DNA of 43,183 nucleotides. Origin: Schmidtea polychroa (lineage: Eukaryota). Shown piece by piece: positions 31,439-34,593 of the stretch; the first letter of the stretch is position 1, and every line of letters starts with the position of its first letter. Under the pieces are notes generated by a model that searched no databases, had not been told where the DNA came from, and saw nothing but the letters and a program-made list of their open reading frames with translations. The DNA lies in NCBI GenBank assembly GCA_044892525.1, contig CM097886.1:147270818-147314000 (forward strand), read 5' to 3'. The translations under genes and the position numbers were made by a program.

Positions 31439-32358
31439 TTGCTCAGATATGGAAAAACAAGAGGAAATAATTAAAACGGCAAGCAGAGTTTTACATAAAC
31501 ATGTGGGCACATGGATAAAAAGAGAATGGAGGTTGGGAGAAGCTGAGTAAACAAAAAATTGAACCAGTTGTAAAAATGAGCGAAAACTATGATGGGGCAT
31601 TAAAAAGAAAACCCGTAAAATTACCGTTTTTAATGTTTATGATCTTAATATTTTATGCAATTTCCAACTAAAACCTCTTCGTTAATTGCATATGATTGCA
31701 CTCAAACAAAGATTGGAGAAATTTATTCGATAATGTATTAAAGAATTAGCAATTAGCGACAAAATTAAAGACAATTCAAAAAATGTATAATTTCATACAT
31801 GTTAATCTTTGGACAAAATAGTGGAGAAATGTTGTCATAATCGAACCGATGATGAAGAAATTTATATGTATTGGACAGTCAAAGAACAGCAGAAAATTAA
31901 AATAATTTTCCAAAAAACCATGTAATTGAGATATTGAGTAAAGGAAAATTTTTTGTCAAAAATGGGAATCTACAGAAACCTCTTCATGGTTATGAAACCT
32001 GTACGAACAATGAATGGTCAAAATTAGAATCTCAAGATGAAACAAAATACCTTAATAACAAAACAAATCACGTTCAAATGCAGATTTGTAGTTGTTTCGA
32101 CCAGTCAGAGGGGGAATGTCACTCACCTCTGACTGGCAGTTTGTTGGATGCTTCTTTTGTTTCGCGTCTGTGTGCGCGGTCTGATTTGTTCGAATATTGT
32201 TGGTGTGCGCACAGACGCGAGAAGTAGGTTTGATTTTCGTTGTTTCTGGTGAAATTTTAGAATTATTGTTTTTTTGTAGAAACTATATTTAATTTTGTGG
32301 TTTTGTTTTACTGGTAAATTTTCGAATTCTGGAATTGTGGATTTTTTAAATCGGAAAT

Positions 32359-32880
32359 ATGGAAGCGAAGATTGTTTTGACAACTGAAGAGAGATTATTC
32401 CAAGTCGAATATGCATTTAAGGCAATGACATTAGATGGATTGCTTTCCGTTGGTATTCGAGGCAATAATTGTGGTGTAGTAGCTACACAAAGAAAAGTTC
32501 CAGGTAAAATGATTGAGAAGAGTTCAGCTACAAGATTGTTTAATATTACTGAAAGTACTGGAGGTGTTATGACTGGTATGATCCCTGATTGTCGATCTCA
32601 AGTATGTCGTGCACAAGTGGAAGCAGCTCGATTTAAATCTAAAATTGAATATGAAATGCCTTGTGACATAATATGTCGTTCTATTGCGGATATTAATCAG
32701 CTCTATACCCAATCGGCTGAGATACGACCATTAGGTTGTTCAATGATAGCGCTATCATATGACAATAAAAATGATATTCTATGTCTTGATTTCATTCAAT
32801 TTCGTTCAATGATGGCATTATCTTATGATATTGAAATGGACAAACTGTTATTATTCAAAACTGATCCCCGTGGCCTTGTG
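32359..32880 (+). pseudogene. PSMA6: Captured proteasome subunit alpha type-6 (alpha1) fragment, N- and C-terminally truncated
   Basis: [61 protein letters not shown] matches PSMA6; contains a short internal duplication [16 protein letters not shown]. Confidence 0.9.
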
Positions 32881-33075
32881 GATGACCATAAAATTGTTAT
32901 TCTCTTTCTTGAATTCATTCATGGTAGCAGAGCGTGGTTCCGGCTAGCCAGCCGGAACAAGGTATTATATATATGTTGTATGTATTATATTTTTATTATA
33001 TTAGATATATGTATTAATTTTTTTGAAACATTTCCCCTAGGGCCTGCCCTCCCTAAACCTATTAAAAATAAATTG

Positions 33076-33354
33076 GCGCAAATATTTGTGAAAACATTAA
33101 CAGGGAAGACAATTACTCTTGAAGTTGAATCTAGTGACACGATAGAAAATGTTAAAGCGAAAATACAAGATAAAGAAGGTAGTCCACCTGACCAGCAAAG
33201 ATTAATTTTCGCGGGGAAACAATTAGAAGATGGGCGAACATTATCTGATTATAATATTCAAAAGGAGTCTACTTTGCATTTAGTGCTGCGATTGAGGGGT
33301 GGAATGCAAATATTCGTGAAGACATTGACAGGAAAAACAATAACTTTGGAAGTG
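33076..33354 (+). pseudogene. Captured polyubiquitin fragment: one full unit (33076-33303, Met1 replaced by Ala, I36S) plus 17 codons of a second
   Basis: [76 protein letters not shown]|[17 protein letters not shown]; synonymous codon differences between the units. Confidence 0.97.
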
Positions 33355-34593
33355 TGGATTATCATTATGTGTCTGTTGATGTGCAGTTATTTGTAAAATT
33401 ACTATTTAGCAATTTGATGGAGGATGATCAGATGTTAAAGGTCAACTATCATAGAAGATGCCAAAGGTCAATTAATTATTGCCAACGTCCGGTTTCAAAT
33501 AACAGATTATTATAATTCCAAAGAATTCCAGAACGATTCCAGAAATTTCCGACAATTCAAACAATTCTACCCAGATAAACAAATTCACAAAATCAATATA
33601 GTTTCTACAAATAATTTCATAAATTCATAAAAGACAACGAAATCAAACCCATTGCTCGCGTCTGTGTGTGCACACCCATTTACCATAATTCGGCACACAG
33701 ACGCGAGAATATTCAACCAACAGACTAATCAACAGCCAGTCAGAGGTGAGTGACATTCCCCCTCTGACTGGTCGAAACAGTAGTAATGAAATAACTGTAT
33801 TTTACAAGACAAAGGTCGGAAAAAGGGTAAATGTTTTTATAAATGATAAAATTCAGGTAGTGTTGGACGAACATCGTCAACAAGCAAAAGGTAGCCTTCA
33901 AAATTCAAAACCGAAAGCAACATCAAATGAATTTATGACGAGAATTATGCATTGCAAGCGAAAAACCAACGCTGACCGGTGGCATATCGTGTTCATCGAA
34001 AATAGACATATTAATCTTCATAATAATAAATTCTTTGAGAAAATAACTATTAATCAAAAATTGAAGTTATTATTGACATTCTTATGTATAAAAAACAACA
34101 GTCTATCATTACACTATAAAGAGAATCTATTTATTAGCAATTGTGTTAAAATATCGTTCAGATTTGTAATTATGGCCATTCCAAGTGACATTCTACTCTT
34201 TGACATTGTGATCAATATAGCCATTGAAAAGGAGAACAATCATATATGACTTTCAGTATTCGGATCCGCGGAGATCAATGTGGTTAGAGACATGGGTGTA
34301 GTAAGATATGATTTCATTGCATGATATTGATATTGTAGAGTATTTCTTTATATTATATCTTTTATGATTATGCTCAAAATGACTAATAATAATCTTGTTA
34401 TGTGACTAATCGTGTTATCCTTTCTGTGAATAAACGGGTTGAGCGGTTACATTGCTGATGGGGAAATTGGGATATAAAAGTATGGTTGTTTTCAGATGAT
34501 TTAACAAAATTTTAACAGAAGATAACTAGAAAAGGAAATTCAAATGGGAAAAATCTAAAATTTCATTACTAGTTAAAATTCCATCTTCTAGAG

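Follow-up and report, generated by a model that had tools for sequence, protein, structure and literature searches.

There is ample documentation from plants of inverted-repeat transposons that capture host gene fragments. A survey of 100 animal genomes reported 370 gene-capturing elements bounded by terminal inverted repeats (Pack-TIRs), and those present as single copies were mostly attributed to gap filling that is independent of transposition (PMC8277862). The large majority of these animal elements (87%) are hAT or Tc/mariner transposons, with target duplications of 8 bp or TA (Tan et al. 2021, PMC8277862), and gene fragments are frequent cargo of the integrase-related GingerRoot transposons (Cerbin et al. 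2019, PMC6839031). Here we describe an element of this general kind in a stretch of 43,183 nt from Schmidtea polychroa (NCBI GenBank assembly GCA_044892525.1, contig CM097886.1, positions 147,270,818 to 147,314,000 of the forward strand), which we refer to as the window and in which all positions below are numbered. The element lies at 32093-33779 and holds parts of a proteasome subunit gene and a polyubiquitin gene between long inverted repeats. It is very probably a Pack-type transposon, and the explanation that best accounts for the whole, which we consider probable, is a single insertion of a non-autonomous cut-and-paste DNA transposon, with an enzyme of the Ginger2/TDD type as the best guess for the transposase.

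The element is approximately 1.7 kb in length and has ends of the form TGT...ACA, its left end starting with TGTTTCGA and its right end finishing with TCGAAACA. A repeat search returned an outer inverted repeat of 49 nt (32093-32141 against 33731-33779) that is 98% complementary, and base-by-base comparison gives a perfect match over the first 45 nt of these terminal inverted repeats (TIRs). The left arm on the plus strand and its mirror image on the minus strand remain similar, if imperfectly, further inward. Using blastn, 32093-32328 aligns to 33554-33779 with 73% identity over 247 columns (E = 3e-31), and a MAFFT alignment carries the similarity to about 32345 on the left and 33515 on the right, so that the imperfect arms measure roughly 240-265 bp. 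Outside the element, the repeat stops sharply at the TG and the CA. The pentamer GTAGT directly abuts both ends (32088-32092 and 33780-33784) and is read as a target-site duplication (TSD); given the base composition, two 5-bp stretches at fixed places would agree in direct orientation with a probability of about 0.002. The terminal 19-mer occurs exactly twice in the window, once at each end of the element, where no occurrence would be expected. An earlier sequence-only reading of this DNA had proposed TG...CA termini, TIRs that are perfect for 45 bp and imperfect for about 250 bp, a 5-bp TSD of GTAGT and the lack of a transposase. All of these were borne out, the last by the list of open reading frames (ORFs) and by Pfam, neither of which places a transposase inside the element.

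The same arrangement could in principle arise without any mobility. A chimeric pseudogene might lie within an inverted duplication of local origin or within an artefact of the assembly, and the two GTAGT copies would then match by chance. Only one copy of the element is seen, and the region around it is a patchwork of closely packed repeats. With 29.7% GC the window is AT-rich, and the remains of mobile elements fill it densely. It is difficult to reconcile this idea with a perfect 45-bp repeat that ends exactly at TG and CA and has a 5-bp direct repeat immediately outside it, or with the presence of a related arm elsewhere in the window. The inner parts of the two arms differ from each other, which makes a mirror-image misassembly unlikely, and the sole run of N in the window is at 41297-41463, with none near the element. 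A further, weak indication is that the element plus one copy of GTAGT amounts to 1692 bp, which is divisible by three, and that the ORFs on the two flanks are in frame, as fits an insertion; chance would give this in one case in three. We therefore rejected an inverted duplication created by the assembly, and we give almost no credence to an immobile origin of any kind.

Since the ORFs on both flanks share a frame, the element may sit inside a pre-existing reading frame of a gene or of another element. A run of purine-rich ORFs lies around the insertion on the plus strand (29108-31438 and 33785-34249) and includes a gag-like protein with CCHC zinc knuckles; the two ORFs that flank the element, 30629-31438 and 33785-34246, have no relatives in Pfam or the PDB.

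Each arm of the element contains two palindromes, one formed by a pair of 11-nt sequences at the extreme end and the other by a pair of 14-nt motifs about 70 nt in from the end. The terminal pair begins at base 9 of the element and is separated by a 14-nt spacer. In the left terminus it occupies 32101-32136 (mirrored at 33736-33771), and as DNA it folds with -12.4 kcal/mol, a z-score of -4.2 relative to shuffled sequences. The 14-nt motif, of the type TCGCGTCTGTGTGC, is present in both orientations in the left arm at 32162-32220 (fold z = -4.9) and in the right arm at 33655-33707, where the pair is complementary at 14 of 14 positions (fold z = -5.9). The paired motifs are 25-31 nt apart. Across the window the motif has nine matches against 0.19 expected, four of which are in the element and four at 21284-21461. 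Paired motifs in double-stranded DNA are typical of protein-binding sites, and the palindromes are most readily understood as putative binding sites for a transposase. An explanation at the level of RNA was considered and rejected: at gathering thresholds no Rfam family matched anywhere in the window, none matched the element at E values up to 1, and tRNA scans were empty.

Between the arms there is only one substantial ORF, which is also the fourth longest open frame in the window. It encodes 345 amino acids on the plus strand (32359-33396), starts some 14-30 nt past the inner limit of the left arm and spans all of the cargo. Pfam identifies a Proteasome domain at residues 30-143 (E = 3e-24) and a ubiquitin domain at residues 242-313 (E = 1e-33). 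The first part of the ORF (32359-32895), from residue 1 to about residue 178, corresponds without a break to approximately residues 13-170 of the 247-residue PSMA6, the alpha-1 subunit of the 20S proteasome. The closest proteins are PSMA6 of cestodes, with 56-59% identity, and the fragment is uninterrupted at two positions where the Echinococcus gene has introns. To put this divergence in context, nine orthologues from flatworms to cnidarians share 73 invariant columns, and the fragment deviates at 21 of them; when each orthologue is left out in turn and compared in the same way, it deviates at 0-8. On this comparison the fragment has lost the constraint that is characteristic of PSMA6. It also contains an imperfect internal duplication, seen by repeat search and in blastn self-matches (32738-32921), in which a copy of 61 nt aligns to a longer one in two pieces, with 79% (26/33) and 85% (34/40) identity, and lacks the stretch between them.

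The ubiquitin part of the ORF comprises a full unit (33076-33303) and the first 17 codons of a second (33304-33354), as identified by Pfam, by a PDB match and by translation. Its residues are identical to those of a polyubiquitin in the PDB at 90 of 92 positions, and its first codon is not ATG. The starts of the two units are 83% identical as DNA and encode the same residues, and unit starts that have diverged in DNA while remaining identical in protein are typical of polyubiquitin genes. The PSMA6-like and ubiquitin parts are joined by a linker of 194 nt, which is made up of 80 nt with 44% GC, 79 nt with only 16% GC and a final 35 nt. The middle segment (32962-33040) begins with GT and ends with AG after a pyrimidine tract, and its end is 35 nt upstream of the first ubiquitin codon. 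Polyubiquitin genes commonly have an intron in the 5' untranslated region (UTR) just ahead of the first unit, and this segment would be the 5'-UTR intron of the donor polyubiquitin gene. Because the intron-like stretch lies just ahead of the first unit, the ubiquitin piece can be read as genomic DNA from the 5' end of a polyubiquitin gene. As 79 is not divisible by three, the long ORF exists only with the stretch retained.

Downstream of the ubiquitin part, the remainder of the interior (33355-33553) is non-genic. The ORF runs into it to end in a short hydrophobic tail that has no genic origin, and it contains two copies of a repeat of about 26 nt (33430-33479; repeat search, blastn and TRF), which is related, in the opposite orientation, to the tandem repeats at 42096-42191. 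Both host gene pieces are truncated and their homology is clear from Pfam, PDB and protein matches. As judged by homology, then, the interior is composed of 5' parts of host genes, namely a PSMA6-like gene and a polyubiquitin gene represented by its putative 5' UTR with the intron-like stretch and 1.2 units, within one ORF. An interior of host gene pieces (PSMA6, an intron-containing segment and polyubiquitin) had been proposed from the sequence alone; the homology to PSMA6 and polyubiquitin is now clear from the matches just named, and the 79-nt segment is a putative intron.

The integrity of this ORF is unusual. The 194-nt linker is open in the required frame in only 0.9% of shuffled sequences and in 7% of genomic windows of the same length, and in a simulation a coding sequence of this size was still open in 4-1% of cases after 10-15% neutral substitution. 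For cargo in decay the ORF is improbably intact, which could be explained by selection or by a donor that was already a divergent paralogue. The first of these would make the PSMA6-ubiquitin ORF a maintained and expressed gene, kept either by the host, as a domesticated gene, or by the element family. Along with the open linker and the frame shared by the two cargo pieces, such maintenance would suit the PSMA6-like part, which has no stop codon in spite of its 21 lost invariant residues, and the ubiquitin part, which differs at just two of 92 aligned residues and at its first codon. The statistics are post hoc, however, and the ORF is known from a single copy. Its PSMA6 part is truncated and internally duplicated and its tail is non-genic, the divergence could be older than the capture, with a divergent paralogue as the donor, and the ubiquitin piece could have been captured recently. 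On these grounds a maintained gene seems quite improbable.

A second locus of similar organisation is found about 11 kb away. At 21170-21590 on the plus strand there is a one-ended arm, recognised by motif matches, blastn and alignment, whose outer limit near 21170 is uncertain. It contains two tandem palindromes of the 14-nt motif (21284-21346 and 21400-21461), and it matches the element at 32152-32266 with 70% identity over 121 columns (blastn, E = 3e-5). A MAFFT alignment shows the inner-arm motifs to be common to this arm and to both arms of the element. Within the window it has neither an inverted partner nor a right end, and an outer terminus of 45 bp like that of the element cannot be recognised. 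Approximately 85 nt after the arm-like sequence an ORF of 126 amino acids begins (21591-21971, plus strand), which appears to be a truncated copy of a gene for a RING-H2 E3 ligase with an N-terminal zinc ribbon. The assignment is based on similarity to P0243, a 220-residue protein from Metaclust and the one match returned by a word-indexed protein search: the ORF is 87-89% identical to its residues 1-129 with 100% query coverage. Pfam assigns Zn_ribbon_19 and RING families to P0243, and the ORF in the window ends where P0243 enters the RING domain; no RING-coding sequence was found anywhere in the window. The direct Pfam match of the ORF to Zn_ribbon_19 is weak (E = 0.01), and part of the zinc-ribbon signature and three residues have been lost relative to P0243. 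Another protein, P0241, came from an exhaustive search of representative proteins and is the 86-residue product of a 677-bp contig in an unrelated ENA assembly. It has the first 50 or so residues in common with the ORF and then diverges, which means that the same 5' fragment exists elsewhere in another context.

The two loci thus have the same layout: after the arm-type sequence, and in one and the same orientation, comes the 5' part of a host gene, which differs between the two. The occurrence of the same motif and arm with other cargo indicates a family of at least two members with different cargo. Capture of gene fragments by this family is supported, as far as comparison of sequences can take it, and is better backed by the two loci than by the element alone. 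The sequence-only reading had called the element a Pack-type element representing a family. The first part agrees with the TIRs, the TSD and the host-gene interior, and the second gains from the 21-kb locus with its different cargo. The three genes that contributed cargo are all ubiquitin-proteasome genes, each represented by its 5' part, a pattern that may reflect capture from highly expressed genes. A more adventurous proposal would be that an integrase-type family keeps expressed 5' fragments (proteasome alpha, ubiquitin and RING E3), driven by its arms, under selection as decoys or dominant-negatives that hinder host protein turnover, so that they would be an accessory-gene strategy and not accidental captures. 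Interference with host protein turnover would in that event be of benefit to the element. We regard this proposal as highly improbable.

Upstream of the palindromes of this second arm we also observed a 57-nt motif that is common to 15935-15991 and 21199-21254 (79% identity, blastn) and ends in ATTATAA. At both sites an ATG follows a few hundred bases downstream. The motif may be a promoter module, or it may belong to some other repeat.

We looked for further copies in sequence collections that did not include the host genome, so that absence from them says little about copy number. The 19-nt terminus had no match in metagenome contigs, and neither the terminal nor the subterminal palindrome pattern had one in genome contigs or viral contigs. 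Exact protein matches for five ORFs of the window were not found in protein collections, nor were loci related to the alignment of the RING fragment found in metagenome contigs. These results bear on the possibility that the element is a single-copy Pack-TIR made in place, that is, a plain non-autonomous insertion whose interior was later replaced by gap filling, in which case the unit with its cargo would never have moved. The survey of 100 animal genomes favours exactly this process for single-copy Pack-TIRs (PMC8277862), the interior bears rearrangement scars, and a second copy of the cargo was not encountered, although the nature of the collections deprives this last point of most of its force. 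On the other side there is a second member just 11 kb away with different cargo in the same position and orientation, and P0241 places one of the cargo fragments in a different context. In addition, the outer 45 bp are perfect despite the strong divergence of the inner arms and of the PSMA6-like part, which fits continued constraint on the ends. Formation in place is therefore unlikely in our judgement, and transposition of the element together with its cargo is the reading we retain.

The class of enzyme responsible can be approached only through the ends of the element. Ginger termini follow the pattern TGTNR...YNACA, and the TIRs of the elements tabulated in the same study (its Table 2) range from 45 to 297 bp (PMC2836005). 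Within this group both TDD-4 and TDD-5 show 5-bp TSDs and TIRs of 260 and 297 bp, while animal Ginger2 elements have TIRs of 45-180 bp and make 4-bp duplications at AT-rich RTATAY targets (PMC2836005). The TIRs described here (45 bp perfect, approximately 240-265 bp imperfect) fall inside the Ginger2/TDD range, and a duplication of 5 bp, known from one insertion only, fits a group in which 4 bp is found in animals and 5 bp in TDD-4/5. Another study likewise gives TSDs of 4 or 5 bp for Ginger2, and by the TSD lengths listed there the 5-bp duplication therefore indicates Ginger2/TDD (PMC10045372). Six of the first eight bases are shared with the terminus of an insect Ginger2 miniature inverted-repeat transposable element (PMC3845634). 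From these end features the Ginger2/TDD assignment has, in our estimation, somewhat less than an even chance of being correct, or an even chance at best. The earlier suggestion of Ginger/TDD-like ends accordingly stands for the TGT...ACA termini, the 5-bp TSD and the arms of about 250 bp, and fails for the fifth base and the type of target.

Several other origins for the ends were rejected. Superfamilies that generate duplications of 8, 6 or 3 bp, or of TA or TTAA, are excluded since none of these is present at the flanks of the element. Transib transposons also make 5-bp duplications, but they have CAC...GTG ends; such ends are absent from the element and Transib is unlikely. An origin of the arms from long terminal repeats (LTRs) was rejected because the repeats are inverted, the window contains no LTR pair and there is no similarity to the pol fragment found at 13-15 kb. 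The sequence-only reading had itself raised the possibility that the repeats could be inverted LTR pieces or an artefact, and on examination neither proved to be the case.

A number of observations weigh against the explanation as set out above, and they concern the enzyme first of all. The termini read TGTTT...AAACA, so that four bases fit TGTNR and the fifth is T in place of a purine. The target at the insertion is TTTGTAGTAATG, which is not RTATAY, although a preference can be neither established nor excluded from a single site, and the duplication is 5 bp long. The window contains no integrase-type partner: its one ORF with rve and Integrase_H2C2 domains (13595-14770, minus strand) sits behind an RNase H domain in the Pfam annotation and therefore belongs to an LTR retrotransposon and is not a Ginger partner. 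The others concern the element and its family. Only one complete copy was seen, and neither the window nor the collections searched yielded another copy of the terminus, so that a single case has to stand for the mobility of the cargo-bearing unit and for a constant duplication length of 5 bp. The relative at 21 kb is without the outer 45-bp terminus and the right end and could be something other than a decayed member. Finally, the PSMA6-like part is far more diverged than the ubiquitin part, which a single simple capture would not explain.

The mismatches at the fifth base and at the target are among the reasons for considering that the same structure and cargo may belong to some superfamily outside Ginger2/TDD, perhaps one not yet described, with ends and TSD that are convergent or are shared with a wider integrase-like group. 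Ends of the form TG...CA do occur in several integrase-related groups, including IS481EU and some GingerRoot elements (PMC6839031, PMC10045372), the element itself encodes no transposase, and the literature cited here reports no nested palindromes in the arms of Ginger elements. Against this, the DNA-transposon group listed with 5 bp among the TSD lengths of PMC10045372 is Ginger2, the lengths of the arms and of the duplication both match TDD-4/5, the first bases resemble the Ginger2 terminus noted above (PMC3845634), and Transib, as the other 5-bp candidate, is contradicted by its ends. We regard a different superfamily as possible, and as less probable than not by a clear distance.

With Ginger2/TDD retained as the best guess, a mechanism can be proposed. 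A transposase supplied in trans would bind the palindromic motifs and the 45 bp conserved at each outer end and would excise the element, and insertion would proceed by cuts staggered by 5 bp. The enzyme would be an integrase-type DDE transposase of the Ginger2/TDD kind, a guess prompted by the length of the duplication (5 bp) and of the arms (about 250 bp) and by the TGT...ACA ends. The cargo may have been gained by template switching during repair or replication, as has been proposed for Pack-MULEs and for animal Pack-TIRs (PMC8277862), and the internal duplication with its missing stretch is the kind of scar that template switching would leave. The inner arm may act as promoter and leader of the cargo ORF.

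The rest of the window contains several further repeats and transposon remains. The pol fragment of an LTR retrotransposon covers 13045-15094 on the minus strand in several ORF pieces (Pfam RT_RNaseH, Integrase_H2C2 and rve); its upstream part is missing, and the window contains no pair of LTRs to go with it. At 35174-36901 on the plus strand, two consecutive ORFs make up a ZBED5/FAM200-type hAT transposase gene, which therefore has at least one interruption, and its best database relatives are 54% identical. On the minus strand, a short ORF at 24007-24270 matches the pogo/Tigger-type DDE_1 domain (E = 1e-11) and is adjoined by inverted repeats of 34-35 nt (24417-24476 and 25532-25570) that are about 1.1 kb apart, probably the remnant of a DNA transposon. 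A 20-nt tandem array of nine copies and a 58/116-nt array (26011-26189, 26173-26670 and 26859-27121) surround an ORF of 165 amino acids, which has a weak match to the SWIM zinc finger and may belong to a Mutator-like element. The longest ORF of the window, with 726 amino acids (5034-7214, plus strand), has internal repeats of 144-150 nt rich in E, K and N and no Pfam match. Two partial copies of one repeat, 75% identical over approximately 360 nt, are located at 18158-19608, and at 41911-42292 two direct repeats of 66-95 nt (88-89% identical) surround the 26-nt tandem array at 42096-42191.

The locus is a compact case of two unrelated host genes fused in one intact reading frame. If the integrase-type assignment is true, gene-fragment capture in animals would extend to another class of transposase, beyond hAT and Tc/mariner, and if the assignment to superfamily also holds the element would stand for a capturing family in animals that has integrase-type ends, of which the literature cited here has no description. 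Should the intact ORF and the consistent choice of ubiquitin-proteasome genes be more than coincidence, they would bear on the origin of chimeric genes and of the accessory genes of transposons.

When compared with known systems, the element resembles Pack-MULEs and Pack-TIRs in organisation. It has in common with them the TIRs and a TSD, the lack of a transposase, fragments of several host genes and a chimeric ORF, as well as cargo taken from the 5' parts of genes and rearrangement scars that are compatible with template switching. It differs from Pack-MULEs in having a duplication of 5 bp where theirs are 8-10 bp, and from animal Pack-TIRs in the amount of cargo, since the median captured piece in the latter is 224 bp and the element carries approximately 1 kb in a single ORF of 345 residues. 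GingerRoot and IS3EU elements resemble it as an integrase-related TIR group with gene-fragment cargo, a minority of which have TG...CA ends. They are distinct in their duplications of 6 bp (occasionally 7-8 bp), their mostly TA...TA termini, their TIRs of 100-150 bp and their length of 4-13 kb, and their cargo was described in clubmoss. To Ginger2/TDD the likeness is in the TGT...ACA termini, the 5-bp TSD found also in TDD-4/5 and the long TIRs, and non-autonomous derivatives of that group are known; the differences are that no integrase-like transposase is seen in the element and that host-gene fragments and nested palindromes in the arms do not feature in the cited descriptions of Ginger. 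The element thus represents a new family, with uncommon ends, that shows a kind of capture already known, the Pack-type capture of plants, of animals and of an integrase-related group of plant transposons.

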